Below the pieces are notes generated by a model. That model did no database searches and was not told the origin of the DNA. It was given only the letters and a program-made list of their open reading frames with translations. The position numbers and the translations under genes were made by a program. DNA of 63,979 nucleotides, the filler included, from Dimorphilus gyrociliatus (taxonomy: Eukaryota > Animalia > Annelida): the NCBI GenBank assembly GCA_904063045.1. It is 4 parts of 4 records of this genome, joined end to end, with 100 filler letters (N's around TTAATTAATTAA, not from the genome) between each part and the next. Parts side by side here need not be neighbours in the genome. Positions count along the whole stretch, not along the records: positions 1 to 18,908 come from CAJFCJ010000200.1; 3 more parts are not named here. The stretch is one strand, 5' to 3'. Shown in pieces: positions 1 through 18,908 of the stretch (positions within the stretch are counted from its first letter, which is position 1; the number at the start of each line of letters is the position of its first letter).

Positions 1-857
1 AATGTTATGCTTTTTTGATTGTTTTTATGTGCTACAAGCGATGCAAGCGCTCCGCCAAGCGAATGTCCAGTCAGAATTACTGGTTTTTTATATTTATCTT
101 TAACTCTCTTAAATATTTTTTCTGCATGCTTAAAATAGCCGACATCTTTATCTACTAATTTCATACAACTAAATGAACAACCAACGCTAGTTAAACAAGA
201 CTCAAGAAAAGAATATTTATTGTTACAACAAGAAAACATTAAAATCACGTTGAGTTTATCATTTTCGGTTGTTGCACCACCCAATTCTATATTAGTTCCT
301 TTAAAGGAAATCACAACAGAATTTTGGAAATTATAAACTAATGTTCTCAATCCAGGTAAATTATACCCTATTTTCTCAATTAAACTAGGTTCATCTCTAC
401 CAGAGTAGTTATTTTGTGCCATCAACAATAACTTTAACATTTCATTTTTTTGTTTAGATTCCATATTATTCCATTCTAAGTCTTCTGTTTTACTAACTTT
501 CTTCTTTTGATTAAAAAACACTGAATAGTCAAAAATTCCAGGTACATTTATAGTATTATAAGAATCTTCACTTATAAAATTTTCTAAACTCTGGAATTCT
601 AATGGATTATTATTAGACTTAAAAAGATTACCTCCAAGTTTTGATGTATCCATTGGAGTTTTACTGTCGTTTGAAACACTTTTATCTTTCTTAGTTATAT
701 CATAAGATTTTTTTAAAGTATTTTTGGTTTGTTTCTCTAAAAAATTGTCAATTTTAGCACCTTTAGAAGACATGTCAAATGTGTCAAAAACAGGCTTAAT
801 AATAACAAATTCTTGTATTTTATAAGTAAAAAATAATTCCAAGAATAGAACCAACAT
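1..857 (-). CDS. ATG15: ATG15-like lipase (class 3 lipase fold), 3'-partial, runs off the window start
   Basis: Manual translation, absent from the ORF track because no stop lies in the window. Hydrophobic N-terminus MLVLFLELFFTY from the ATG at 857, then ISFKGTNIELGGATTENDKLNVILMFSCC and the lipase motif VILTGHSLGGALASL (GHSLGG at 51-68). Confidence 0.8.
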   Translation of the reverse strand, partial: MLVLFLELFFTYKIQEFVIIKPVFDTFDMSSKGAKIDNFLEKQTKNTLKKSYDITKKDKSVSNDSKTPMDTSKLGGNLFKSNNNPLEFQSLENFISEDSYNTINVPGIFDYSVFFNQKKKVSKTEDLEWNNMESKQKNEMLKLLLMAQNNYSGRDEPSLIEKIGYNLPGLRTLVYNFQNSVVISFKGTNIELGGATTENDKLNVILMFSCCNNKYSFLESCLTSVGCSFSCMKLVDKDVGYFKHAEKIFKRVKDKYKKPVILTGHSLGGALASLVAHKNNQKSIT

Positions 858-910
858 ATACCATTTAATAAAAACTTCGTCTTATAAAAGTTGTTTTAAA
901 AATAAAACCT

Positions 911-1393
911 TTAATTATCAATCACTTTGTACTGATCTTCCTTGTCCTGTTGTTTTTTCTTAAAATCAACAACTACACTATGAACTGTCTTAGAAATTCT
1001 TCTTGTTGTTTCACAAACTGTAACACTATCACCTGGCTGAACAAGACCAAAGAAACATGGTGAAAGATGGACACTAACCTTTTTTATTCTTCTCTCATAT
1101 CTTTTATATTTAGAGTTGTAGTGAAGTCTTTTTTTTATAACAACAATGGTACGTGGTTGTTTCATCTTTAGCACTTCAGCTTGAAATAGTCTATTTTTTA
1201 AATTAATTTCTCCTGTAAATGGACATTTTTTATCAATGTATGTTCCATTCATAGCAGCATCTGGTATTTTGATATTATGACCAATGTCTCTAAAAAATCT
1301 TTTCTTCTTTTTCAAATCATCTTTTTCATAAGGATTTATGAATACTTTTTTCTGTTGTGGATATGTTTTATACCTTTCTAAATGTTCTGCCAT
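911..1393 (-). CDS. RPS11: 40S ribosomal protein S11 (uS17)
   Basis: YIDKKCPFTG, KMKQPRTIVV, YNSKYKRYERR and VHLSPCF are eukaryotic S11 motifs; intronless. Confidence 0.97.
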   Translation of the reverse strand: MAEHLERYKTYPQQKKVFINPYEKDDLKKKKRFFRDIGHNIKIPDAAMNGTYIDKKCPFTGEINLKNRLFQAEVLKMKQPRTIVVIKKRLHYNSKYKRYERRIKKVSVHLSPCFFGLVQPGDSVTVCETTRRISKTVHSVVVDFKKKQQDKEDQYKVIDN

Positions 1394-1394
1394 T

Positions 1395-1398
1395 GGGG
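1395..1398 (-). promoter_or_regulatory. Microsporidian-type CCC motif upstream of the RPS11 ATG
   Basis: Minus strand reads TTTTTACCCC-A-ATG. Confidence 0.7.
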
Positions 1399-1554
1399 TA
1401 AAAATTTTTAGAATAATTTTAAAAAGAAAATAATTTTCAAAATTTAGGTTAAAAGTACTATTGGTCTAGTAAAAAGCTATATAATATAAATTCATATTAT
1501 GTTAGGTTTAAATTAAATGGAATTGATATGTTTTTATAAGGTTTTTAATGTTGA

Positions 1555-1736
1555 TAATTATAACAAAGTTTTAACTTGAATTTTCATATCTAAAACACAA
1601 ATTTTATGTTTTAATAGACTTCTATAATAATATTTAAATATTATCTAATTATAACAAAGTTTTAACTTGAATTTTCATATCTAAAACACAAATTTTATGT
1701 TTTAATAGACTTCTATAATAATATTTAAATATTATC
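1555..1736. repeat. Perfect tandem duplication, 2 x 91 bp
   Basis: 1555-1645 and 1646-1736 are identical (taattataacaaagttttaac...aaatattatc). Confidence 0.9.
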
Positions 1737-2257
1737 AATTGATAAATTTCATTAAAAATTTGATAAATTTCTAATTATTTGAACTATAAAATAAGTGATA
1801 TCTCTTTGTAATTTACTTATTATAGTTAAATCTATCATTTATACAAAATAGGTTAGGTTTTTTTTCTAACTTTCTAGCTATTCAAATATGACAAATAACT
1901 TATTTATTTATAAAAAGTAGATAAAATAAAATATTTAATCTCTGTGATTAAGAAAAATATTTTTATTTTTATCAAATATAAAATTTATATATTTTACACC
2001 GTCAAATATAACATTGAAAGCAATTAATTAAAAAACTTTTAACTTCTATAAAAAAGTATATAAATAAATATTATAAACAGATGTTTAGGTGATATAATTT
2101 AATATGACTATAGAATTGTTCTTAAAAAACATTTTATGAATTAAATCATATTTTTAAAACCAAAAAATTTTGTGAAGACTGTCAAAATAATTAAGTATGA
2201 AAATTGTTTTTAATTTTAAATATAAAGTCGTATCAAAAGTACAAGAGATTAAGAAAA

Positions 2258-2710
2258 ATGTTCTTCTATCCTATAATTTCAATTTCGCATACTATTAAAA
2301 AAGGAAACTTGTTCAATATGATGTCAGAAGGAAGTGGTATAGTTTGTATAAAAAACAATATTTTAAATATACTAAATAAAAAAGACGTAACTGAACATAA
2401 AAATTGTGAGATTAGTTTAATTGAAACTACAGATGGATTTTTATTCAAGGTAAATAGATATTTTATATGCTCGGGTGCACGTTCTGAATATATTTACCCA
2501 TGTGTAGATTATCATGATAAGATGTTCTGGGATGTTGAGATAGAGAAAAAAAATCTTATAATAAAACAAAACAGTAAATGTTTAACATTTGATGAGAGCT
2601 TTAACAGAGCCATTAGTAGAAAAGAAATTAGTTTAGTCTTAAAAAAATGTGAAATAGATAATAATAACAATAAATGGAGAGGATTAGGTGATATTTTTAA
2701 TTTAATTTAA
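2258..2710 (+). CDS. Small microsporidian protein, possibly ricin-B-lectin-like (beta-trefoil)
   Basis: The ORF-track start is non-ATG; the first ATG is at 2258 (MFFYPIISIS, hydrophobic). Cys/Trp spacing FIC..YPC..FW and KCLT..LKKC..NNKW resembles ricin-B repeats. Confidence 0.45.
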   Translation: MFFYPIISISHTIKKGNLFNMMSEGSGIVCIKNNILNILNKKDVTEHKNCEISLIETTDGFLFKVNRYFICSGARSEYIYPCVDYHDKMFWDVEIEKKNLIIKQNSKCLTFDESFNRAISRKEISLVLKKCEIDNNNNKWRGLGDIFNLI

Positions 2711-2806
2711 AAAAGGTATTATTTAAAGGATAAGACTATTTATTTTTAGTAAATTTAATATATGATATAAATTATGAATAATTAGATTAAAATGTATGTT
2801 TTTTAT

Positions 2807-3733
2807 TTAAGAAGTAGGAAGGTTGTTGAAATAAGATACTGAAAGTATAGGAATTACTAAGTTATCATTCATATTTGTACTATACTCTAAAATACTAACA
2901 ATTAGATAAAATAAAACTTCTGAGAAATCTTTAAAAATTAAATAATGTACACAAACTCCCACAATGAACCCCACAATGAACCCCACAAAAGCCCCATAAA
3001 TGGTTTTTGTATTTGATTTGAGATAAACTCCAGTAAAAGAAGCAAAGCTATCCAAAAAGCAAACAGCTATCAAATTGCTTATTTGATGTTTTTTAACTAA
3101 ATAAATCTGTGGAATTAATAATGAATATAATAAAATAACATGAGAAAACACATGATTTGTATTTTCTTTTTTATTCCTAAGAAGATTCTCTAATTCTGAA
3201 ATATCAAGGTTTAAAGTACAGCAATTGAAAAATAGTGCTACGAAAAACATAGTATTTTCTACTCTATTTTCTATTATGAGAAATACAAAAAATAAAAAAA
3301 AATGAATTATTTTTCTGCGTAAATTTTTTTCTAATATTTTAAAATAGATTAATAAAATAATAATAATAAACAAATATAAACACAAAAATAGTATTCTTAT
3401 GTTTGAAATCACTTCATTAAAAATAGTAATCAAGCTATTTAAACTGTTATTCCATAAAAAAAACTGATTACCTAAATATAATAAAAAATCACTAAAATGT
3501 CTTTTTTTGTAATTAAAATGGTATATAGAACTTATAAAAACACCCTTATTTTTGACTTTATGAATTAATCTTTCCATAATTAAAGATAATAAAATTGCTT
3601 CATTATATGTAAATGATGATATATTATAAGTAAAATATAAAAGGTTTGCTAGAAAAAAGACTATTCTTATAATTTTTGTATTCTTTAAGCTTTCTAAAAT
3701 TAGACATAAAATTATTGTATCATCTGAATTCAT
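2807..3733 (-). CDS. Dolichol kinase (SEC59) / CTP-dependent polyprenol kinase-like membrane protein
   Basis: Polytopic; C-terminal DSFASFTG..KTIYG..ILE..DNLVIP matches the CTP_transf_1 kinase pattern. The ATG at 3733 is preferred because CCC lies 5 nt upstream. Confidence 0.75.
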   Translation of the reverse strand: MNSDDTIILCLILESLKNTKIIRIVFFLANLLYFTYNISSFTYNEAILLSLIMERLIHKVKNKGVFISSIYHFNYKKRHFSDFLLYLGNQFFLWNNSLNSLITIFNEVISNIRILFLCLYLFIIIILLIYFKILEKNLRRKIIHFFLFFVFLIIENRVENTMFFVALFFNCCTLNLDISELENLLRNKKENTNHVFSHVILLYSLLIPQIYLVKKHQISNLIAVCFLDSFASFTGVYLKSNTKTIYGAFVGFIVGFIVGVCVHYLIFKDFSEVLFYLIVSILEYSTNMNDNLVIPILSVSYFNNLPTS

Positions 3734-3738
3734 TACAA

Positions 3739-3741
3739 GGG
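3739..3741 (-). promoter_or_regulatory. CCC motif upstream of the dolichol-kinase-like ATG
   Basis: Minus strand reads AAAAATACCC-TTGTA-ATG. Confidence 0.55.
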
Positions 3742-4438
3742 TATTTTTATAGGTATATTTGTATATAGACAATAAATCTATTAATGGTAAAAGATTATTC
3801 AATTGATATAAGCTTATTTTTATAGAACACTAGTCAATGTAATTTTTATTTGTATGAGTTTATTTTATTGTATTGTTTTTTAAAGTATTTTGTAATTTTG
3901 AATATTTTTATTTATAAATATAAATTTTGTAAATAGTTTATCAATGTTAGGGTCAGTATAACCATCTTAATTAGAAACCTATACAGTTTTATATAAATGA
4001 AATATTCATAATATTCTATTTTAAATTTTGCCAAAAATAGAAGTTTATATTTACATATACAATATTATATTACTTAAATCAAAATAGGCAAAAAAAATAC
4101 TTTTTTATAATATACTATAATGCTTATTCAATATTTTCTTAAACTTTTATACATTAAATTATAATATTTGGTAAAATAATAAATATCAAAGTCTATGCTA
4201 ATGTAATATTCAATTAATTTCTTATTATTTGTATTTAAAAATATCTACTATTTAAGCTATAAAATATCTAGTATCGTTTAATAAGACTAAAAATCTAATC
4301 TGAATATAAAAAATTAAATTTTACAATTCAAAGTTCTATTCTAATAATGGTAAAAGTTATTTCCAAAAAAATTAATTTTAATATATTAAATTAAAACAAA
4401 AATTTTACTGTAATTTTTATTATTAGTTGTAAAAATCA

Positions 4439-4441
4439 CCC
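4439..4441 (+). promoter_or_regulatory. CCC motif upstream of the Swi5-like ATG
   Basis: AAAAATCACCC-TTTG-ATG. Confidence 0.55.
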
Positions 4442-4445
4442 TTTG

Positions 4446-4799
4446 ATGATTTTTAATAATTGGGATAAAGAAAAAATAATTTTTAAAAAAAATATTAAAA
4501 GCTTTGAATATTTAGAAAACAATGGTTTAATAGAAGAATTAAAAGACAACTATTATTACCTTAAAATATCAAATTTTGAACTAGATGAAATCTGGTATAA
4601 AGAAAAGTGTAAAGAGATTTTGGATGATCTAAAAATAGAAGATGTTGATAAGAAAATAAACAATTATATAAATGATATTAACCAATATAACCTTTTAAAA
4701 GACATATCTCAAGAACTAATGGGGAAAATAGCTGAAATGAGAGGTGTTACAAATAAAAAAATACATGAAGAATTAGATGTACTAAGTGATAGTGAATGA
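4446..4799 (+). CDS. SWI5: Swi5/Sae3-like DNA recombination mediator
   Basis: C-terminal YINDINQYNLLKDISQELMGKIAEMRGVT matches the Swi5 pattern YN-x-x-KD-x-x-Q-x-L-x-G-x-IA-x-x-RG. Confidence 0.7.
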   Translation: MIFNNWDKEKIIFKKNIKSFEYLENNGLIEELKDNYYYLKISNFELDEIWYKEKCKEILDDLKIEDVDKKINNYINDINQYNLLKDISQELMGKIAEMRGVTNKKIHEELDVLSDSE

Positions 4800-5179
4800 A
4801 ATTATTGTATTATACTTCAGTTTAAACTATAAACTAATCTATACTTAATAAAATTTTAATTAAATTATAACATAGAATTAATCTGTATTATTTATTATAG
4901 AATATATTAATTAATTAAACGAATTGCTGTATTTTGAATTAAAATATTCTTTTTATATATAAATTTAATATTATAATTAATTAGCATATTTTATAATACT
5001 CCAAAAAATAAGGTACAGGAGTCAATTTAAATACAACTGAATTTAAAAAAAGTTAAAACTACAGAATTTTGTAAATAATACTAGTAAGCATAGCACATGC
5101 TTTAAAAACAGGCGGTAATATTGAATAAATAAACTATTGAAGATAAATATTAAAAAAAAACAAAGTACATGCTTTACAG

Positions 5180-6300
5180 AGGCGCTAAGTCGTATTTTTA
5201 AAGATTTAAGATTTTGATTTCTAATCTAATTTTGTATTTTATATTAAATTATAAAGGACTACTAAATAAATCTATATAAATATTTTTTTAAATAAACAAA
5301 TAACTCTAATTTTAAATTATAAAAATTAAATTACTTTAAAAAAAATAATAATTCAATAAAGAATTTTTAATATAAAACATTAACTTTTTTTATATAAATT
5401 CGATAGAAGGTCGTATTAAAGGTTCCAAGAAAGTACCACTTATGAAGTTAGTAATGAATAACGTAGAGAAATAGTCTTTGAACTGATGAGGAATCCCACG
5501 ATTGTTTACGTTTTATAATAGAAAGATGGGGGGTTTTATTTGAAAAAAGTTGTGGGAGGTATAAAAAATCTACAGATTTAATAAGAAAGCCTGATTTATA
5601 GAAGTAAGCTTGCGTTGTAAAAGCCATAGCTGTCTTAAAAGGAGTTCTATTAAAAGAAATCACTCTTTTTATGTATAAAATTATATTTAGTGAAAATTAT
5701 AAAAACAATTTATAAAATAACAAAAAAAATTAAACTGATAAGCATATGTGATGAAATACAAGTGAATAAAGCAACTTTTATCGATATAAAATACTTATCA
5801 TTGTCTATATTGAAAAAAATAGCTAAGTTTTCGTATAGGTAGTATCAAAATAGAAAGTGATGAATGTTTACTCTCAAAACGCAAATACCAGAAGGGTAGA
5901 ATAACAAAAACGTATCTGTTGTGGGAGTTGCTTTTAGAACTACGAAAAGCCCCCTTTTTTACTTTAACAAAGATGGGAATTGCTGATAGATTAAAAAAAA
6001 GTCATAAAATTAGAGTAAAACGAAAATAATGACTTATATATAAAAAGGTCATAATTGCATTTAATCACTTAACATGAAACGTTTGAAAATAAATCATAAA
6101 AATTAACGACAATTAGTAGAAAACAAACAGAAACATTTAGAATATTTCATTAAAGACAGAGAGTCTATTATTAAAAAAATTGTATCCCTGAGAATTATTT
6201 TATGGATATAGCTATATATTCATCAATAAAAGGACACTTTTCCAACTATTTGAATTTTTTTCACATTTTTTTGGATTTCTTAACATGACTATTTAGCATA
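5180..6300 (+). mobile_element. Degenerate Merlin / ISXO2(IS1595)-like DNA transposon
   Basis: 5835-5903 translates IGSIKIESDECLLSKRKYQKGRI (compare VEIDES..KRKYNRGR). After a frameshift VSVVGVAFRTTKSPLF follows, later INHKN; many stops. Boundaries are approximate. Confidence 0.55.
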
Positions 6301-7051
6301 AATTCTATTTCAAACTGCTCAAAATAGATTTCTGAAGAATATTGTTTTTGAAAATTGCAGAAATAGTATTAATGTTACTAATTATATTTTACTGTTTGAA
6401 ATATTTACTTTTTTGTATAATCATATAAGCTTAAAAGTTTTATCATTAGGTTAAAACTGATATTTATTTAGCCATTTATATTCAATTAAAATATATTTGT
6501 AGATTTATATATTATTTAACTATTGATATGATATATTTAAAGTTTCTTTTTGTATTAAATAATAATAATAATAATAATAATAGAAATAATTAAAATCTAT
6601 TTTTGATGGATAAAGTATACTTTTTATTAATATTTGTATTTGATAGAATGTAATTGTTTAAATGTTTAATTAATTTATTTATATTATGTTGATTATAAGT
6701 AAATTTTATATTTGTCTAAAAAAATATAATATATATTATAAACTTGATGAATAAATAAGGATTTATATAAATTCTTAACATTGCTTGAATTTGATATATT
6801 AATTCTAAATGTTAATATTTCTAATTTTTTAAATTGAGATAAAGTTTTTTTTTAAACTTAACGATTCTTTTTTTAAAAGAGTACCTTAGGTTAAGGTATT
6901 AGTTTACACTTTTAAATTAAAATATTAAAACTTGTAAAATATTATTGAAAAATAGCCAAATTGTTGTTGTTATGTAAGGGGAAAAGACTATCAGTGTTTA
7001 TTTAATCGGGAAAACACCACCTGATGGAGGAGTTTTTTACTATTAAACATA

Positions 7052-8563
7052 CACTATCCCCCCCCAAAAAAAAGTGGTCGATTAAAAAAATCACGTTTTT
7101 CGATGTATAAATAACCTTATAAAAATAAACAAATATTAACAAATGCATCTTTCTTCATCTACTATTTATCACCAAAATAGTTGGTTCTATAAAACAATAT
7201 TAAGCATTAAATCATACTTTTATTTAATAAAAAAAAATTTATGCCAAAAAAAAAGTGGTCGAATTTATTTGATCCCTTGTTAGTCTCTCTTTAGCTCGGT
7301 ATAATGTTTTAGATCTTCTTGGCATAGACTCCACAAGCTTTTTACACAGCTTAGTAGGTGTGTTATCCAATATATCATTCAGTTTAATCTATAACTTATT
7401 TTTGTTTTTAATTGTTGTTCCTTGAAATTTACGCTTTATATAAGCCCAGAGATGTTCTACAGGGTTCATATAAGGTGATATGGATGGCCAAGGCAATACA
7501 TTTATTTTATTTTCTTTAAAGAATTCGGTTGCTAACCTTGATGTATGCTTAGGATCATTGTCCTGCTGGAAGATAAAACTATTAGAAAGACCCAAAATAT
7601 CCTTTGAAGTAGTCAATACTTTGGCCAATATACAAGTATATCTAATAGCATTCTTCTTTCCATCTAATAATATGAGTTTCCCAATACCTTCATATGACAT
7701 TGCACCCCAAACCATTATACTGCCTCATCCATGCTTGAAAGTTGGTATGCAATTCTTTAATTCACTATACGCCGAACAACTATGCCATACTATTACTCTA
7801 CCATCTCTTGTAAATAGGTCAAATTTACATTCATCTGTAAACATAACCTGTTTCCAAAAGCTCATTGGGTACTTAATTCACTCTCCTGCTTTATTGAATC
7901 TGTTGATATGTTTTTTTTCGTTAGGAGTAGTATTTTTTTGGTTTAATGCCCGTGTACACCTGCATCATATAAACTGTTTCTTATTGTCTGTAAACATACT
8001 TGTTTATCTGTCTTTATTTCTAACTTGTTTGCCAACTTTGCCGCTGATAACCTAGATGATTTAACAACTTCTGAAATAATAAAATCTCTATCTGTATCAT
8101 TAAGAGACCTTTGTCTTCCAGAGCCCATTTTTCTTTTTATTTCACCTGCATCCCTATATATTTTTAAAATTTTGGTGACTGTTAACTTTCCTATTCCTGT
8201 TTTTTCTGAAATTTTTGACATGGAACCCCCTTGCTTAAAAAGGGAAATAATCTCTCCTGACATTAAAGAAGTAATTTTGTTATAGATAAGGGGAATTTGA
8301 GATAATAATTTATATATATACCAATAATTTTCCCTTCAAATTGTCTGATTTTTTAAACTGACCACTTTCTTTTTGGCATAATTTTTTTTTATTAAGTAAA
8401 AGTATGATTTAATGCTTAATATTGTTTTATAGAACCAACTATTTTGGTAATAAATAGTAGATGAAGAAAGAAGCATTTGTTAATATTTGTTTATTTTTAT
8501 AAGGTTATTTATATATCGAAAAACGTGATTTTTTAATCGACCACTTTTTTTTGGGGGATAGTG
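7052..8563 (-). mobile_element. Tc1-family (DD34E) transposon, full length, transposase disrupted
   Basis: TA flanks at 7050-51 and 8564-65; about 210-bp TIRs starting CACTATCCCC with an internal AAAAAAAGTGGTC repeat. HTH ORF at 7943-8263; catalytic ORF at 7389-7715 with FQQDNDPKH...WPSISPYMNPVE (34-residue spacing). Confidence 0.95.
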
Positions 8564-9036
8564 TATTTATTTAACTGCTAAAACAGGTTATGTCACTGAA
8601 AAAATTAGATAAAATAAAAGAAAATAGGATATAAAAACATTCTCTATATTCTATTAAAAAGGTGTCAAAATTAACAAAATATAATCATGTGATAAGTTTA
8701 ATAGAATTTAACCACTTTATTCTTATCATGTGAGGCCAATAACTAAAAGAAAATATATACAGGGGATAAAGTTTCTTATAATAGCTTGTCTAGTAATTTA
8801 CTTATAATTATTTTTAGTAGTCGAAATTTGTCCTATTATAATGATTGAATTAGGTTGTGTATTTTAAGCTGGTTATATATCTTCTAAATAAAAAAATTAC
8901 CTTCCTTTTTAAGTATTTTTGGACCACAAAATACTTGATCTTTTAAGAGAATATGTCTTAAATAGTAGTGCAATTTTTTTAGAGTTATTTTTAAAAATTT
9001 TATAAAATTTATGAGATTTTTATCTAATAAAATTTA

Positions 9037-9039
9037 CCC
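9037..9039 (+). promoter_or_regulatory. CCC motif upstream of the chromodomain-gene ATG
   Basis: AATTTACCC-TTCA-ATG; supports a start at 9044 rather than 9011. Confidence 0.55.
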
Positions 9040-9043
9040 TTCA

Positions 9044-10690
9044 ATGTTAATATCAAAAATAAAAAGGATCACTGGTTTAAAGAAAATAAATGAAAATATA
9101 TTTGCATTGGTTTATTGGGAAGATAGAAATTGCTCTTGGGAAGACATTAAAGATATCAACTGCCCACTACTTCTACATAATTTTTTTACTAAATGTCAAA
9201 GAATACAAGAACAATTTAAAGAAAGGGATGAAATGAAAAAAAAAAGAGAACAAAGAAATTCGATGTTTCTGGATTTAAAGAAAACTCAAAAAAAGGTAGA
9301 AAACACATCAGTCGAGTCTATACAAGAATTAAAAGAAGCAAGGTCTTTCATTTCACATAGTACCATTCAAGTAAATAAATCACGTATCGAACAGAAAGAA
9401 AGCTCTATTCGTGATAAAAGAAGAAAAATAAATGAGAAATTTTTAAATGACAGACGATATTTCGAAGGAGCTCCAATTAATAAGCCGATACTTGATACAT
9501 TACCTAGACCAATTTATAAAAAAGAGTATAGACCAGAATTTGAAGAAAACGTTATGATCTATGAATATAAAGGCAGACCTATTACTAGATTTCAATGTAG
9601 TTCTGTTTTTTCATCTGGTATTACTACCCCCAAAAAATTCAAACATAGGCAGACATTGAATATTGAAATCGTTAAAAATTTGTTCTTTAGTTTAAGACAA
9701 AGTCGTGACTTTGATCAAGTTGGAATATTTAAATTAAAAAAGATTGATGGGGATATTGGTCATGAAAGAATATTCGAGTCTGTGTTAAGTGCTAAATATG
9801 CTATTATTGATCATTCTTACAAAGGTACCTCATTGATTTGTACTGCAATTGAAGAATTTGAGCCATATTATATCAATGGTATTTATAACTATGTCTTCAT
9901 TCCTATAGAATGTATAGATCTACGTTTTTTATGTAAAGAATCTCTTGATTTAGATAAATATCATGCTAGTTCATGGAAGACATACTTGCCTAGTTACCAA
10001 ACGTTTATTGAACAACAGGCTCTATTTTTTAGCAATCTTTCTGTGAATACTAAAGCAAGGTTTTCAATAGTTTCGGGGTCTTGTGATTTAATTTCTAACT
10101 ACCTACAAAAACATTTAATGGTCTTGGATTGTATACAGGTATCATTATCTACAACAGATGTTGACTATGTTTTCATTTGTGAAAAGCAGTTAAAATTTTT
10201 CACGAAAACAGAGATTTTTGAAAGTTTGATTACCACCAAATGTCGTTTTTTTATTTATAATATGCATAGAATTTTAAAAAAAGAAAATGTTTTTTATGAG
10301 GTTTATCAAGAAGGCGGCATATTTGTTCCATCGCAGTCGCTTTTAGAAAATCCGGATATTCCTTATGCTTTTGATTTAATCCAATATTGTAGTAATAATG
10401 ATAAAAAATGGAAAGTTATGGTACCAAAAGAAGTTATTATTTTTTTAAGAAATAAAATAAACTCGTTTAAGGGGTCTATTATACAGCAAGGTTATATACA
10501 TTTAACTAATATTTTAAACAAACATATTATTGATTTTTCACAAGATAAAATAGATGACTATCTCAAAGAAATTATCAATAAAAATTTAATTACTCATCGA
10601 TTTTTCTATATTATCGATGATATTAAAGAACCAACTCAACATAGAATATCTCCAAGTGACGCCTTGAATCTTTATATAAAAAAATTTTAA
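9044..10690 (+). CDS. Chromodomain-like protein with a large uncharacterised C-terminal region
   Basis: Long intact ORF. N-terminal IKRITG..ALVYWEDRNCSWEDIKDINCPLLLHNF resembles the chromodomain LVKW..TWE pattern, followed by a charged coiled region. Confidence 0.6.
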   Translation: MLISKIKRITGLKKINENIFALVYWEDRNCSWEDIKDINCPLLLHNFFTKCQRIQEQFKERDEMKKKREQRNSMFLDLKKTQKKVENTSVESIQELKEARSFISHSTIQVNKSRIEQKESSIRDKRRKINEKFLNDRRYFEGAPINKPILDTLPRPIYKKEYRPEFEENVMIYEYKGRPITRFQCSSVFSSGITTPKKFKHRQTLNIEIVKNLFFSLRQSRDFDQVGIFKLKKIDGDIGHERIFESVLSAKYAIIDHSYKGTSLICTAIEEFEPYYINGIYNYVFIPIECIDLRFLCKESLDLDKYHASSWKTYLPSYQTFIEQQALFFSNLSVNTKARFSIVSGSCDLISNYLQKHLMVLDCIQVSLSTTDVDYVFICEKQLKFFTKTEIFESLITTKCRFFIYNMHRILKKENVFYEVYQEGGIFVPSQSLLENPDIPYAFDLIQYCSNNDKKWKVMVPKEVIIFLRNKINSFKGSIIQQGYIHLTNILNKHIIDFSQDKIDDYLKEIINKNLITHRFFYIIDDIKEPTQHRISPSDALNLYIKKF

Positions 10691-11855
10691 ATATCTATAA
10701 ATAAAGAATAAAATATAATAACATCTATTTTTATATAAATATATATACGCTGTACCTTAAAAAATATGGTCTTCCATATTTTTGTAACTTGTATACAATT
10801 TCGTTTGTTTTATCAAAATTGAATATATACCAAAATTTTTATAATTATCTACTGAACCTTCTATGCGGGGGTCTAGTCTATTTCAATACCATTTTTAAAT
10901 ATTTTTATCTAAAAACTTTAAAAAGAGTAATTTTCATTATATATTTAATAGTATAACCATTCTTTTTACCGATGAAATAAAAACGCTTTTTTTAAATATA
11001 AATGCTGACTTTTAGCAGATTCGTAGCTTTAAATATCTCTATTTCGCGCTCTAGCAGCTATTAATTTATCCCTTTTTAAAAGTTTTAATTTTTTATTTTG
11101 ACCTTGATTATTGAACAGAAATTCTCGATAAGACTAAATTCTAGAATTAGTTTTAGGATAGCATTATTATTATTATATAAGTTTACTTGTATGTTAAGGA
11201 ATATTATCTTATAAGAAATAAAAGTGACTTCTAACTTTAGAAGCTGATATTAATAAACTAAAATTTAGTATATTAAAGTAATACGTTCTATACATTTTTA
11301 AATTTCTAATTACATTCTTACAGAAATATGATATCAAAATCCCCGCATACTAATACTGCCCTACCTAAACTTTAATGTATTCCAAAATTTTCGAATTTAT
11401 CTGATTTCCTGAAAACGATTAATTGGTAAAATTTGCATTGCCCCTTTAAAACCAAGTTATATTGAACTGTAATGGTCTTAACACACAAAGAGCGCAATGA
11501 GAAAACAATGTTTAGTAAAAGTTTTCTGTCATATTTGATGGATTTAAACATACTAAAAAACAAAAATGTAAAATACAGCCGTATTTTAAACGAACCAAAA
11601 TACTAGAGAAGGTTTTATTTGGTCTTTTAAATCAAAAAAATGTAATGAAGGTTAATTCTTTATTCGTGCTCAGTCTATTTTCCTAGAATCAAGGTCCTGT
11701 TTATAAAATCGTTTTTATTATTTATAAATGGCGTTTCAAGACCAACTCTTAAACTCTTTAAGAAAATCCACCCCCAATCATAAATAATTTATTACAGTTT
11801 TAGGTTTAATAAGACGATCCTATAATTAAAAAACTAATAAAATCGATTGGTCGAT

Positions 11856-13660
11856 GGAAAAGTGATTGAAATAGACGAAAATTTACCCAGCAAGTAAAGA
11901 GATGATTAAAATAATTATAGGGTGGAGGTATATACACTAGTGGTCAAAAAAAACTGAAATTTTCAAAAATCCGATTTAGGTGGTTAATTGAGATGATGGA
12001 AGTTAAAAACATAAACATCATATAATAGTAATAAATTTCATACTTTTAAATCAAAACTTTATACAATTTTTTTACATTTTTTTCATAAAATTATAATTTT
12101 TTTTAGAAACCTTGACAAAAAAAACTGGAATTTTTATTTTATAAGTAAATAGAAATTTTCCCCTCCACATCAATATATAAACCACCTTATTATATCCCTT
12201 ATTATGGGAAGACACCTATCTGACTCTGAAAAAGGTAAGATTTTGGGCTTAAGAGAAGCTGGATTATCGTGAAGAAAATAGGAGAAAATCTCAACAGACC
12301 GACTTCAACGATATCCTTATTCATCAAAATTATTTTGAAAGGAATAGTATTGAGAGGAAGCTAGGTTCTGGCCGGAGAAGGTTTTTAAATAAAGGTTCGA
12401 TCACTAAAATCAAAAACTTGGTGATGTCAAATCCAAAAATCTCCTCAAAAGATATAGTTAAAAAATCCAGTAGATGTTTCACCAGGACAGTTAGAAGAAG
12501 CCTAAATGCAGTTGAATTTTTGGACGAGTGGCTGCAAAAAGCCCTTTTTGACAAAAAAAATAAGGTTCTTAGATTAAACTGGGCATACAAGTATATTAAT
12601 TACAATGAAGAAGACTGGAATAAGGTAATTTGGAGCGATGAAAGTAGATTTAAGCTCTTTGGATCCTATGGAAGACAATATGTATGGAGAACAGTTAATT
12701 AAAGGCTAGAAAAAAGAAATTTACGACCTACTTTTAAGTTTGGAGGTGGAAGTATTATGGCGTGGGGGTGTTTTTACGGTAAAACCCTTGGGAAACTTGT
12801 TTTTATAGATGGGAAACTAAATTCCATAGACTATATAGATCTTATTAGTAAAAATCTGTATGATTCCATGTCAGATAAAAGTGTTTCAGGGTACATTTTC
12901 CAACAGGATAATGCACCATGTCATGTTTCTAAAAAAAGTATGGACTATTTTAGAGAAAATAAGGTTGAATTAATGAACTGGCCACCACAATCACCGGATT
13001 TATATCCGATAGAGAATGTATGGGCATTTATCAAAAAAGAAATAGTAAAATCTCCACCAAAAAATATGAAAGAACTAAAGAGGCTAATAGAAAAAATTTG
13101 GCAAGAAATCCCTCAAAATTTTTTAAAAAAACTAATAGATGGTATGCATAATAGATGTTTAGAAGTTATTAGGGCGAATGGCGGTCATATAAGATATTAA
13201 CCAAAGAGTAAAATCGAATTCCAGTTTTTTTTGACCATTTTTTTTACTTTTATTTTTTTTTCATCAAAATAACATAAAAAACCTTTAAATACTATTGTAA
13301 AAAATATTTATTTGTATTTATATAAACTTAAACCATTTTAATTTGTCTTTGGTTTTTTGTATTTACATCAAAAAACAATATAAAAAAAATTCCAGTTTTT
13401 TTTGACCACTAGTGTATAGAATAAAAAGAGTGTGTTTTCCCAAAATTTTCAAGAAAAAAATAGACAATCTCTTGATAAAATCATCATAGATAATTTTAAA
13501 GAATATTCAATAATTATATAAGATGAATGGAAAGGCTATTGTAATATAAAATAATAATAAGTATGCTATTTTACATTAAAACATAAAACTGAGTTTTTTA
13601 GGTAAAGAAACAAAGGAAGTTCATACTCAAAATATTGAAAACCAATAAAAATGGCTTACA
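11856..13660 (+). mobile_element. Degenerate Merlin/ISXO2-like transposase interrupted by a Tc1 insertion
   Basis: GKVIEIDENL at 11856-11885 precedes the Tc1. After it come KIIIDNFKEYSIII*DEWKGYCNI and ETKEVHTQNIE (about 13480-13640), collinear with Merlin motifs VEIDE / ISDxWKAY / HTQxIE. Confidence 0.65.
11935..13414 (+). mobile_element. Tc1-family (DD34E) transposon, full length, transposase disrupted
   Basis: TA flanks at 11933-34 and 13415-16; termini CACTAGTGGTCAAAAAAAACTG and its reverse complement, with inner repeats near 12112 and 13220. Transposase starts at ATG 12204 (MGRHLSDSEKG) and includes IWSDESRF and FQQDNAPCH..WPPQSPDLYPIE; frameshift near 12270, TAA at 12700-12702. Confidence 0.95.
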
Positions 13661-15698
13661 ATATGCCTTAAATCACGAGGATGATATAAATGTAATCTTA
13701 AAGATCATATCAATGATTATTTTTTTCTAAAAAAAGAGAATCCTTTTTTGGAAATTATTAACTGGATGAAAGTTCTCGTAATAAAAAATGGTTATAAAAT
13801 CTCGTCAGTTTATTTTTTACGTGATTTTAAGGGCTAAAATAAAAACTTTGCTGCTATTGAGCAACCCCCCTTTTAAAGCAGTTGGAATAAAATTGGATGA
13901 CAGAAGAACTTCAATGGAAAATTATATAAAATTTTATACTAACTAAGTTTCGCAAAAAAACTTAAATTTATGAGAATTAATAAAAATAGATAATATATCT
14001 AGAGATAAATCTGTGTAAATATTTATAGGCAAAATCACATGTTTATCTCAAAAAATACTGTTGTCTGTTCTTTAAACTTTAATATCTTAATAGACCATAT
14101 ATTTATTCTATATTAAAACAATAAAATGATTATTATTTGAACTTCCAACTGTATTTTTACATTTTTAAACAAAAATTAAAGATTCTAAAATACTGCCATA
14201 TATATATTTCCTGGGAAAACATTAGTAATTCTTTTTCTATTGAAATATATTAATTAGTTTAAACTCATTAATTCCTATATAATTAGATAAATAATTATAC
14301 TATTTGATAAAATAATGTGTCAAAGTTTTATAAACATAAATTAAGATAAGAACTACTGCTACAGTGTCTTTACATAAATATAATGGCTAATATTAGGTTT
14401 TTATAAAGTATAAATAAATTTGAAATATTAATGCTCAATTGTAAAGTTTAAAAATAAATCCAGAGTATATGATATGATTTGCTATAAAATATATACTCAT
14501 AATATTCTAAGGTATAATTAAAACATACCCCTACAATACAAATCATTGAATTTATTGTTTTACCAATAAATAATTTTATAATTCTCTAAAATTTAAACTC
14601 AACTTTCTGCTAAAAATTATTATAAAACTCATTTTTTAGATTCAAAACTCAACTTTGTAATAATTTTTAATAAATAGTTTAAAAATCATCATAAACTATG
14701 GTTTTCCCTCCATTTCCTATTTTATACATTAAAACATGATTGAGTAATTTAAAATTTCCATAAAAGCTTAAACTATTTTTGTAGTATTGTAAACTTTTAT
14801 TTTGTATTTTTTTGGATCAATTTTATTGGTTGATAATTACAACTATTATTAGATAGATGAAAATGTTTATTCTATTATAAACTTGAAAAGTTATTGTTAA
14901 GAAATACTAAACAATAACGTTAGGTTTAAGTTTGGTTAGTAAACTGAAATAACAGCTACAAATATATATTTTGATATGAAAATGATCTAAAAGGTTACAG
15001 AAAAAGACTTACTTGTTAATTTTTTAAATATTATAATAAGAAAAGAATTTATTCAAAAAATACAATTACTTAATCAAGAAAGTTAATAAAAAAATTAAAA
15101 AATAAAAAATTTATATTCAATAAATAAATAAATACTTAAAAAAATACAATTACTTAATCAATAATATTTAACAATAAAATCTGTATAAATAGATTATATA
15201 ATAACTAGAGTGTGTTTTATTAATTTAATATTTGAGTATAAAATGAAATATTAAAATATAATTGGATTTATCTTTATTGAAGAATAGATTTTATACTCTT
15301 TTTTTATATCTATAATTGAATTTAAAGGATTACAAAATTTAAAATATAAAATTCAAATAAATAGAATTTATTTAAGCATTTGTTTTAATAAATAATATAA
15401 ATTTTTATTAAAATATATATCTCTAAGGTGTTTACCATAAATAATAAAAAAAGCTATTTTTTTTTAAATTAAACCATTTTAATTTTAATGACGTGTTAAA
15501 ACTCCTAAAATGATTCGAAATTCAATTTAAAGAATAATTTTATTTAATTAAATTTAACAAATTATTTCCATACTTTGCTGATTATATTTTACCAATTAAG
15601 TAAGTTGAAGTTTCCATTTTAATTAGTGAAAAATCAGTAATAGAGAAAAACCAAATGAGTTCTTGAGAATAAAAAAAGTTCAACATCACTTTTAATGA

Positions 15699-16136
15699 TT
15701 ATCGACTGAGCTCAGGTGTTGCTCTTGCATCCCTTGATCTGAGTTTTTTAACAAGAAGAATGTCTTTTTCCATAACTGTAACTCTTTTGGCATGGTTGGC
15801 AGCTAAATTAGCATCCTCGAATAGACCAACAAGATATGACTCTAGGGATTCGTGCAATGCATTCAAAGCATGAGACTGGAAACGTGCATCGGATTTTAAG
15901 TCATTAGTTAAATTTCTACACATTCTTTGGAAAGGTAATTTTCTGATCAAAAGTTCTGTAGATTTTTGGTACCTTCGGATTTCTTTAAGAGCAACAATCC
16001 CTGGTCTGAATCTTGGTTTCTTTGCTCCAGTAGATTGAGATGGTACTGCAGACTTTCTTGCTGCTTTGGTTGCTAGTTGTTTACGTGGTGCTTTTCCTCC
16101 TGTAGATTTTCTTGCTGTTTGTTTTGTTCGAGCCAT
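15699..16136 (-). CDS. H3: Histone H3, divergent microsporidian type
   Basis: [28 protein letters not shown] tail and intact histone fold; divergent [17 protein letters not shown] segment and a C-terminal LRSR extension. Confidence 0.98.
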
Positions 16137-16140
16137 ATGA

Positions 16141-16144
16141 GGGG
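16141..16144 (-). promoter_or_regulatory. CCC motif upstream of the histone H3 ATG
   Basis: Minus strand reads CACTTACCCC-TCAT-ATG. Confidence 0.7.
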
Positions 16145-17873
16145 TAAGTGTAAAGATTTTTTTATATTTGCAACAGGAGGTGAAACACAGTGATTCTAAT
16201 TGGTGTTTTTTTTGGAATTTTCTTTTAGAAAGAACTTCAAAAAGTTTTTCAAAAAAAAAGTATTTTTAGTTTTTTAATTATCCAAAATTTTAATTTTCCA
16301 TTATAAATCTTTACTTCCAGAAACGGAAGTTTTAAATTTATTCAAAGACCTACATTTTTAGTTATTATATTATTCAAATCATGTTTTAATCTGTTTTATA
16401 ATAAATATTTTATATAAAACAATTGATAACTAATAATAATCTATGCAATAAATAAACTATTTAATTTTAACTTTACTTAGAATATTTAAATAAACTTATT
16501 CTCTTTTAGTCAACTTTACTTAGAATATTCAAATAAACTATTTAGTGTCTTATTAATATTTTATATTTAAACAAAAAATTAAAAAATAGATAAATTTTAT
16601 TTTTGTAAGAAACTACTGGTAATTGTTTAATTAATATAAAAATATGTATTATTCTGTTAAAAAATAAACTTTATATAAAGAATCGATTGATACTTTGAAA
16701 CTACTAAATAATAAAAAAATATAAATCAAAGTACTTGAAAATACATAAGTTATAACTTTAGGAAAATCTTATAAATTAGACTAAAAGTAATAAACAAATA
16801 ACTGAGAATATCTAATAAGAATTCTTATTATTTAACTCAAGAAAAACTACTTTTAGAGATTTTTAATAGAAATAAAAATTACTCATAATAGAGAGTGTTT
16901 GACTAAAATATCAAATTTAGTTTAATTAAATAAAATAGTAAATTATTATTTTCTAGAATTCCAATCTACGTTTTTTTTAAATACTACCTTTTTTATTATC
17001 ATTAAAAAAAGATATATTAATATATAATTAATGTTGTGACTAAAAGCCCCTTTTTTTGGTATTTTTGTTAAAGAGGTGTTTATATCAAATCTAGTTATAT
17101 AAGATAATAAAACACTTTTATTCTTTCGAATTATTTGATTATATTGTTTAAAAACTGAGTACTAAATAAGAATGTCACAGAAGTAGTCATTTATCAAAAC
17201 CTAAACCTTTTATTTTGGTATATGATAAATAAAATATTGGCATATTAAACATGCATACATTAATCTAATTATCAGAGAGGTTAAATATTAAGAACTAAAA
17301 AATAGTAACTTAACAAGTGGGAAATTTGGCTATATAAATAAATTTAATATTTTTTAAAGAAAGTAATTAAACTTAAATAGTCAACTTATTAAAAATTGTG
17401 TAATACTAACTTATTATTAATACTTTATATTTGTATATAGAGAGAAATCTGGAATGTTGACATAATTATTGATTTTAAAAGGAAAATCGTATTATAATGT
17501 TCGTTAAAATATGAAAAAATAAACTGTCAAGTAATTTATATATAATAATTACATATTGATTAAAAAGATTCTCGTTAAATTAGAAAAATTCATTTATAGC
17601 TCAAATGGGACTAAAATACATATAAAAGAATCCAATAATATTTATTTTAAATACAACATAAATTTTAATATATGCAATTTAAGTAAGAAAAACTTATAAA
17701 TACAAAAAATATTTTTGAAGTTTAGAGTAGTTTATATTGAGGCTTGATGCAGTTTTATGTATAAGCAAATAGAGAACTACGGTTATAAATTTCAAAATGA
17801 TGTTGTACATCATTACAAAGTACCATTTTTTTGTTTTTTTTTTACTTCTGAAAGCAATTTTTACCAATCTGTT

Positions 17874-17900
17874 TTTGTACAAGATAACGATCCTAAGCAT
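17874..17900 (+). mobile_element. Highly degenerate Tc1 transposase fragment
   Basis: FVQDNDPKH motif in an otherwise stop-rich frame; no TIRs found. Confidence 0.35.
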
Positions 17901-18908
17901 ATTATTAAATTAAAGAAGAATTTCTAACAGTCAATAGCATTTAAATTGAGAGTTAGCTTTTTTAATTTTTTATTTTAATTGAATCGAAAGTAAAAAGTGA
18001 ATCTATCGAATATAGAAAGATTGCTATACACTTAGAATAGAATAGTTTCTTTTAGTGAGCTTTCTAAAAACCTAATTTATTTATAAAAAACAAATCTTCT
18101 TACCTAACAGACCAAATTAGATTCTATAAATAAATAATCTGAATATTCTTAATTTTTTACTTAAAAAATTAAAAACTAATTAATTTAATATAATGAATAT
18201 AATAATAGGTTTAATATAACATTAAAAAAACGATAAATAATTCTTTAGTTACTTTTTAATGTGCTTATTAAATTATACAATTAATCGTATTCACGTTGTC
18301 TAATATACTTTTTAAGTCTATATAAATATTTCAACTGAGCGTCTATGGTGTTTGTAACACAATTTTGTGTCTCTAATAAAATATTTGCTTTTAATAGCTA
18401 TCTAGATTTTTATATATAAATCAATATCAACTTTTAAAGTGTTAATAAACCTAAAAGATACAAAAATAATTCAAAAAAGGAAAATTTAATATTCAATTCA
18501 CATAATAAAGGAAAAGCTTTCATTAAAACTTAAAGGATTTATAAAATATAGGTGCATCCTCTGCTTGTTCTCGGCCTTAACTTCTAAGTTTATTTTTTGC
18601 ATCTATACAATTTAAAATAAAACTTCCATTTAAAAAAAAATATATGTTCTCCATTTTTAGTATTATCTTATACTGTTGTAAATAAATCGCTATTTTCATA
18701 CAGAAGAAGATTTTAGCAGAATAGCAATTTATTTAAGATTTTCTATAACATTAGTGTTTAGGTCGATGGCTCTCAGTGAAATATGACCTAAAAGGATTTT
18801 TTACAAAGAGATAGTGATTCCTTTCTAGTAGCAAATTTTTCATATTAAGTTAACATTTAGTGTAAACTTGTCTAAGTATATTAACTCGATATAATAAAAA
18901 AGTAAATT

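Follow-up and report, generated by a model that had tools for sequence, protein, structure and literature searches.

The stretch analysed here, which we refer to as the window, is 63,979 nucleotides of DNA deposited under the annelid Dimorphilus gyrociliatus (NCBI GenBank assembly GCA_904063045.1) and consists of four parts joined end to end by filler; the locus of interest lies in the first of these, positions 1 to 18908 (record CAJFCJ010000200.1). At 9044-10690 on its plus strand is a gene that we regard, with good confidence, as the microsporidian counterpart of fission-yeast Chp1, a compact chromodomain/charged linker/SPOC/domain II/PIN-like protein for which we propose a docking mechanism of the type used by RITS (the complex for RNA-induced transcriptional silencing). 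Confidence is higher for the narrower part of this claim, membership of the Chp1 family together with the domain architecture, which we consider very likely. The parts of the gene are listed below, where Z and root-mean-square deviation (rmsd, in Å) refer to VIA structural alignment, pLDDT is the predicted local distance difference test score of the structural model, and 3TIX is the crystal structure of the Chp1-Tas3 core from Schizosaccharomyces pombe.

9044 to 10690, plus strand: Chp1-like coding sequence, 548 amino acids when translated from Met12 (559 if the in-frame ATG farther upstream, at 9011, is used)
9047 to 9229, plus strand: chromodomain with a degenerate aromatic cage, residues 13-73, pLDDT 86-91, with structural and profile matches
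9230 to 9538, plus strand: Lys/Arg/Glu-rich linker, residues 74-176, a helix running on from the chromodomain and then a low-confidence stretch
9539 to 9928, plus strand: SPOC beta-barrel, residues 177-306, Z 11.4-11.8 against the FPA, SPOCD1 and PHF3 SPOC domains (rmsd 3.0-3.5, 116-121 residues)
9929 to 10039, plus strand: SPOC-to-domain-II linker, residues 307-343, with conserved aromatics and pLDDT below 50 for 308-323
10040 to 10306, plus strand: alpha/beta domain II, residues 344-432, aligned within 3TIX_D, with near-invariant L369, F413 and F414
10307 to 10687, plus strand: PIN-like domain, residues 433-559, Z 8.1-9.2 against the SMG6 and SMG5 PIN domains, with no conserved acidic tetrad

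The gene occupies a single unbroken open reading frame (ORF) from 9011 to 10690 on the plus strand, which is 559 codons long if read from its first ATG and 548 if read from 9044 (Met12); residue numbers throughout are counted from 9011. The start at 9044 is probably the correct one, because the N-termini of the homologues align to Met12 in the family alignment and residues 1-12 are modelled at a pLDDT of just 32. Among the ORFs of positions 1-18908, where GC content is 17-31% in 1-kb windows, this frame is the longest (the runner-up encodes 331 amino acids), and a tblastn search with the Antonospora orthologue returns it as one uninterrupted high-scoring segment pair (9056-10624, E = 5e-27). 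An open frame of this length in AT-rich DNA, together with 14 collinear homologues, establishes that the ORF singled out by the original prediction is real. Both peptides quoted there occur in the translation (EVYQEGG... around residue 430 and KKWKVMVP... around residue 465), as do the chromo-like box (residues 13-73), the charged linker (74-176) and a globular C-terminus of about 380 amino acids (177-559).

The homologues were recovered with a single-sequence phmmer query run exhaustively against 1.84 billion representative proteins. They score from E = 1.6e-25 to 2.2e-4, are 528-678 amino acids long apart from one 370-residue partial, and align with the window protein collinearly from end to end. 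All named members are microsporidian and represent at least six genera: Vavraia culicis (VCUG_01207), Antonospora locustae, Hamiltosporidium magnivora and H. tvaerminnensis (one Hamiltosporidium entry being CWI37_0055p0010), Spraguea lophii (SLOPH_885), Tubulinosema ratisbonensis (TUBRATIS_003490) and Dictyocoela roeselum. Their deposited records call them hypothetical proteins, the UniRef label going no further than “Chromo domain-containing protein”, and we found no source name or paper that ties these microsporidian proteins to Chp1, SPOC or PIN. Identity to the window protein is 15-22% in the family alignment and 21-26% over the phmmer-matched stretches. Chp1-like proteins are thus some 15-26% identical between genera whose ribosomal protein uS17 is 50-60% identical to that of the window; the family appears from these comparisons to evolve very fast yet to keep its fold and synteny, which is reminiscent of rapidly evolving genome-defence chromatin proteins. 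A word-index protein search, whether with the single protein or with the family alignment, found nothing, because at about 20% identity too few 5-mers are shared and the candidate list fills up with matches to the low-complexity linker. An exact look-up of the window proteins gave no identical entry in the collection searched, and a prokaryote-only contig collection, uninformative for a eukaryotic family, contained no relative.

The C-terminal half resembles Chp1 in structure. We built AlphaFold2 models of the full protein with the family alignment and of the C-terminal half alone, both from shallow alignments (15-16 sequences). In the full model the chromodomain and the C-terminal half are confident, and between them lie a long helix and a linker of low confidence; the C-terminal half folded alone reaches a mean pLDDT of 82.8 and a predicted template modelling score of 0.68. 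Foldseek against the PDB places 3TIX first with either model (E = 4.8e-14 with the full model, 1.5e-14 with the C-terminal one), a lead of some ten orders of magnitude over the following matches, which are isolated SPOC or Med25 ACID domains (approximately 4e-4 to 6e-4). VIA-align pairs model residues 177-559 with Chp1 517-957 (3TIX_D, Z 16.0, 361 residues), the SPOC barrel from residue 177 onward being aligned to Chp1 516/517 onward. An exhaustive scan of 48,161 chains, carried out independently of Foldseek, again ranks 3TIX first (Z 16.6, 341 residues, C-terminal model 1-383 against Chp1 516-957), with SPOC domains at Z 9.8-11.6 and PIN domains at Z 7-8. Domain II on its own yields generic BRCT- and CheY-like matches (Z 6.3-6.7).

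Sequence profiles lead to the same protein. Searched against all PDB sequences, the family profile matches 3tix_B at E = 3.4e-4, a chain that represents the C-terminal half of Chp1 within the S. pombe Chp1-Tas3 core; when the profile is restricted to the C-terminal 380 residues this chain is the sole significant match (E = 6.6e-5, the next being 0.23). The alignment covers the PIN-like region, residues 243-433 of the Chp1 chain, and the columns aligned to Chp1 are the most conserved of the family: F413/F414, G435-G436, K466-W467, R530 and F532, of which those from G435 onward are the leading motifs of the PIN-like domain and R530 is invariant. The glycine pair and downstream tryptophan that the original prediction named for fungal Chp1-like C-termini are, with the RF columns that follow, exactly the columns that align to Chp1. 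Its inference of a Chp1 homologue is therefore supported from both ends of the protein, by the chromodomain matches described below and by 3TIX as the top structural and only significant C-terminal sequence match, and the C-terminus has the SPOC/PIN-like fold it anticipated, with 3TIX leading in Foldseek, VIA and the exhaustive scan on two models. A protein language-model search of the ESM Atlas, whose results we treat as leads only, points the same way, its nearest clusters being fungal chromodomain proteins of 1000-1400 amino acids; a Basidiomycota 714-residue cluster and SPOC clusters are further leads.

Conservation within this half argues for a scaffold rather than an enzyme or a phosphopeptide reader. 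The acidic catalytic tetrad of PIN nucleases is not conserved in residues 433-559, where the sole conserved acidic column is D449 (11 of 15 members), and the conservation table of the family SPOC barrel contains no conserved basic column. Between SPOC and domain II, by comparison, the poorly modelled linker holds conserved aromatics (W322 in 13 of 15 members, Y329 and F339 in 10 of 15 each), as expected of a segment that becomes ordered on a partner, and we therefore propose residues 307-343, the counterpart of the Chp1 linker on which Tas3 binding depends (PMC4981400), as a candidate partner-binding segment and the surrounding domains as a docking platform. In the linker that precedes SPOC, residues 74-176 are length-variable and poorly aligned across the family, and are modelled as the end of a helix spanning 52-111 with pLDDT below 50 for 97-134 and 147-178.

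At the other end of the protein, the N-terminal 60 residues superpose on the chromodomains of HP1/Swi6, SUV39H1 and Rhino at 1.0-1.4 Å. Residues 13-73 fit the Rhino chromodomain bound to histone H3 trimethylated at lysine 9 (H3K9me3; Z 7.0, rmsd 1.0 Å over 60 residues) and SUV39H1 (Z 6.8), and the family profile matches the same proteins by sequence (SUV39H1 E = 3.7e-5, HP1alpha 2.5e-4, Rhino 3.4e-4, with the range of chromodomain matches extending to 6e-4). The box suspected at the N-terminus thus does model as a chromodomain, with the central tryptophan, the TWE motif and the C-terminal helix conserved with HP1, SUV39H1 and Rhino.

The aromatic cage that reads methyl-lysine is another matter, and the earlier suspicion that it is incomplete is borne out. 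In HP1 and Rhino the cage is formed by Y24, W45 and Y or F48. Assigning the corresponding columns by hidden Markov model and structural alignment to SUV39H1, HP1 and Rhino, a sequence-level test, we found that only the second position is kept, as W36, which is invariant in the 14 members having the domain. The first position, residue 15 (serine here), is S, L, M, Q, E, I, V, K or N and never aromatic in 13 members. The third, three residues after the tryptophan, falls in a 3-residue deletion present in all members relative to SUV39H1, HP1 and Rhino, and the residue now found there is R, K, M, S, H or L, again never aromatic. Two cage residues are thus lost, and in Chp1 the single substitution W44A abolishes H3K9me binding (PMC4849473); canonical reading of H3K9me2/3 by the family chromodomain is therefore, as judged from these columns, unlikely.

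Set against known systems, the protein shares with S. pombe Chp1 its whole domain order, an N-terminal chromodomain followed by SPOC, domain II and a C-terminal PIN-like domain, at roughly 13-15% identity in structural alignment and in about 550 amino acids as against approximately 960. Chp1 has an RNA recognition motif (RRM) between its chromodomain and SPOC, whereas none was detected in the microsporidian protein. An RNA-binding domain is listed among the domains of RITS proteins (PMC12863538 S12 Fig). Vertebrate TASOR, of the complex HUSH (human silencing hub), has SPOC, DomII and PIN modules homologous to those of Chp1, with the difference that the chromodomain is in cis in Chp1 but on MPP8 in HUSH (PMC7532188). 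The fold-level match to TASOR is by way of Chp1: no solved TASOR SPOC/PIN structure was among the structural matches, and one family member has a faint match to the Pfam model TASOR_alpha-beta (E = 0.14). TASOR begins with a pseudo-PARP domain (DUF3715) and has no chromodomain, whereas the microsporidian protein carries a chromodomain in cis and has no PARP-like Pfam or structural match. The protein is for these reasons Chp1-type and not TASOR-type. An HP1-type protein was considered and rejected, since the C-terminus is SPOC/domain II/PIN and no chromoshadow match was found; HP1/Swi6 and SUV39H1 carry a chromoshadow or SET domain, neither of which is present here, and together with Rhino they have a full cage, whereas this family is without the first and third aromatics and has the 3-residue deletion after the cage tryptophan.

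Several observations weigh against a straightforward equation with Chp1. With one of three cage aromatics left, the H3K9me tether that defines the role of Chp1 in RITS is, to judge by the alignment, probably absent. The solved Chp1 chromodomain structures are not among the PDB sequence matches of the family profile, and the chromodomain therefore looks generically HP1/SUV39-like. No RRM was found in residues 74-176, where no beta-alpha-beta fold is modelled and no RRM Pfam match occurs, though a low-confidence model could miss a small fold. Superposed as a whole, the models fit 3TIX poorly (rmsd 11-13 Å, TM approximately 0.4) because the domain orientations differ from those of the Tas3-bound crystal, and the modelled match is accordingly claimed per domain and as collinear only. 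Pfam models stay below threshold for the window protein and all members alike (best E-values 0.0057 for Chromo, 0.15 for a single SPOC match and the TASOR_alpha-beta match given above), so that Pfam by itself would have missed the identity of the C-terminus. Finally, Nosema, Edhazardia and Anncaliia, which are positive for RNA interference (RNAi), are not among the homologues returned by our single-sequence search at about 20% identity. What emerges is a divergent Chp1 variant, in which homology is clear, the architecture is reduced and the hallmark cage is not retained.

How such a protein might work is suggested by S. pombe, in which Chp1 clamps Tas3 between its barrel and its second domain, with the inter-domain linker crucial for binding (PMC4981400), and in which Tas3 bridges to Ago1 while the chromodomain tethers RITS to H3K9me chromatin (PMC7619638; PMC12863538). 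On this model, the SPOC/linker/domain II/PIN platform would be a non-enzymatic docking surface, as in Chp1, that clamps a Tas3-like adaptor, and the adaptor would connect Argonaute-bound small RNAs, or another sensor of nascent transcripts, to chromatin at repeats and transposons. Contact with chromatin or nucleic acid would be supplied by the cage-less chromodomain and the long basic helix. Because two of three cage aromatics are gone in every family member, this contact is probably not canonical H3K9me2/3 reading; binding to the nucleosome core or to nucleic acid is conceivable, since the Chp1 chromodomain also has both of these activities (PMC4849473).

By this analogy, a function of the protein within a RITS-like silencing complex coupled to RNAi is plausible but falls a little short of an even chance. 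The genomic context offers some support, as a Tc1/mariner element lies about 500 bp upstream of the gene. Vavraia, Hamiltosporidium and Spraguea all have Dicer and Argonaute, and Encephalitozoon, Ordospora and Nematocida have neither (PMC7313128 supplement 6). No protein of the latter three genera is among the homologues, although at about 20% identity a search with one sequence is no proof of absence. Since the same search also misses several RNAi-positive genera, co-distribution of the family with RNAi is not established and is suggestive only. No paper connecting Chp1 or RITS to microsporidia came up in a full-text literature search, and the single article in which both terms occur cites microsporidia only for RNAi loss; in Mucor, both Chp1 and Tas3 have been reported absent (PMC12863538).

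The foremost alternative, somewhat unlikely in our judgement, is that the Chp1/TASOR-fold scaffold operates without RNAi, in HUSH-like transcription-coupled repression or in some other chromatin or RNA-processing assembly, with a different partner on the platform. TASOR provides the precedent, as it shares SPOC, DomII and PIN and functions with neither small RNAs nor Argonaute (PMC7532188; PMC7619638), and the degenerate cage and missing RRM both mark divergence from the RITS prototype, to which the unproven co-distribution with RNAi can be added. Counting the other way are the missing pseudo-PARP and the Chp1-like placing of a chromodomain at the N-terminus, the presence of Dicer and Argonaute in every named lineage that has been tabulated, and the fact that Chp1 is the only sequence-level PDB match of the C-terminus.

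The next alternative is a canonical Chp1 orthologue. Its chromodomain would still read H3K9me2/3, by means of a pocket that is rearranged or otherwise compensates, and would tether RITS to heterochromatin exactly as in S. pombe. The fold is very close to that of H3K9me3-bound Rhino and of SUV39H1 (rmsd 1.0-1.3 Å), the invariant central tryptophan is the equivalent of Chp1 W44, which is essential for H3K9me binding (PMC4849473), the histone H3 gene of the window keeps the ARKS context at K9, and Encephalitozoon has been reported with Clr4-like and Swi6-like proteins (PMC10158259). A position 15 that is never aromatic in 13 members, and a third cage position lost to a deletion and likewise never aromatic, nevertheless make this version decidedly improbable.

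An active PIN RNase or RNA-decay factor of the SMG6/Nmd4 kind, merely carrying SPOC and chromo-like modules, is very improbable. The PIN region does match SMG6, SMG5, Nmd4, Rrp44 and VapC at Z 7-9, but Chp1 outranks every isolated PIN domain and covers all three C-terminal domains, the C-terminal sequence profile matches Chp1 and no nuclease, and the acidic tetrad is not conserved beyond D449. A spurious ORF or a transposon-borne chromodomain protein of the chromovirus type can be dismissed: chromodomains do occur in Ty3/gypsy integrases (an ESM Atlas match) and transposon remnants flank the gene, but it lies outside the mariner inverted repeats (7085-8534), sits in a housekeeping neighbourhood conserved in three genera, has no integrase or reverse transcriptase domains by Pfam, and combines a 559-codon frame in AT-rich DNA with 14 full-length homologues.

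Returning to the reading of the gene as a microsporidian Chp1, its consequences extend beyond this locus. It would re-annotate “hypothetical” and “chromo domain-containing” proteins in at least six genera and extend the known range of the Chp1/TASOR scaffold to a deep-branching lineage related to fungi. Large transposon-rich microsporidian genomes keep Dicer and Argonaute, and a conserved, syntenic scaffold offers a concrete handle on co-transcriptional silencing in them, while the uniform loss of two cage aromatics is a natural variant for asking what the scaffold does without canonical H3K9me reading. A bolder version, which we consider unlikely but worth stating, is that RNAi-keeping microsporidia run a minimal RITS-like machine whose half-size Chp1 anchor no longer reads H3K9 methylation and is tethered instead by way of the nucleosome core, of nucleic acid or of a partner; if true, it would be a natural experiment that separates Chp1/TASOR scaffold function from methyl-lysine reading, and the scaffold would already have been present early in the fungal lineage.

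The surroundings of the gene, on positions 1-18908, contain the following features.

911 to 1393, minus strand: uS17 ribosomal protein gene
2807 to 3802, minus strand: multi-pass membrane ORF of 331 amino acids, no Pfam family
4443 to 4799, plus strand: Swi5 gene
7085 to 8534: Tc1/mariner element with 169-nt terminal inverted repeats (7085-7253 and 8366-8534, 94% complementary)
7389 to 8263, minus strand: decayed Tc1/mariner transposase in at least two ORF fragments (helix-turn-helix part 7943-8263, DDE part 7389-7715)
12418 to 13200, plus strand: second Tc1/mariner transposase remnant in two ORFs (HTH_Tnp_Tc3_2 at 12418-12702, DDE_3 at 12757-13200)
15699 to 16136, minus strand: histone H3 gene

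A neighbourhood of uS17, Swi5 and the Chp1-like gene is common, with local inversions, to the window (911-4799 and 9011-10690), A. locustae (2994-8213 of the examined locus) and H. tvaerminnensis (5561-11665). In A. locustae the Chp1-like gene is within about 2.3 kb of uS17 and Swi5, and the 336-residue protein encoded immediately downstream of it is a homologue of the 331-residue membrane ORF of the window (tblastn E = 3e-19); for the uL16 gene that separates Swi5 from the Chp1-like gene there, tblastn gives no match in the window. The H. tvaerminnensis genes run in the order uS17, lipase, Swi5, Chp1-like gene. The Vavraia locus has no neighbours in common with the window, and a six-frame hmmsearch of the 20 kb around uS17 in Edhazardia, confined to that region, found no family member. 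The shared neighbourhood supports the Chp1-like gene as a positional orthologue in Antonospora and Hamiltosporidium, as far as gene order can indicate, and excludes a mobile-element gene.

Among named organisms, uS17 has its matches in the microsporidia Dictyocoela, Cucumispora, Spraguea, Paranosema/Antonospora, Hamiltosporidium, Edhazardia and Anncaliia, at 50-60% identity (the closest match overall being 85%), and we therefore take positions 1-18908 to be microsporidian. This similarity and the two Tc1/mariner transposase remnants confirm the transposon-rich microsporidian context from which the original prediction had argued. The first element stops about 500 bp upstream of the Chp1-like gene, which is outside its inverted repeats, and is probably inactive, since its transposase is split into ORF fragments; no long inverted repeats were detected flanking the second remnant. 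In the tail encoded by the H3 gene, K9 and K27 each retain their ARKS context and K4 is also kept, so that the early remark on K9 holds and the substrate for H3K9 methylation is, by its sequence, present in the window although the nearby chromodomain is without a full cage. Elsewhere, an ORF of 168 amino acids on the plus strand (2204-2710) has a weak, sub-threshold ricin-B-lectin Pfam match (E = 0.0054, 17 bits against a cut-off of 29), and a perfect tandem duplication lies in the intergenic DNA beside uS17 (1555-1736, two copies of a 91-nt unit, 100% identical).

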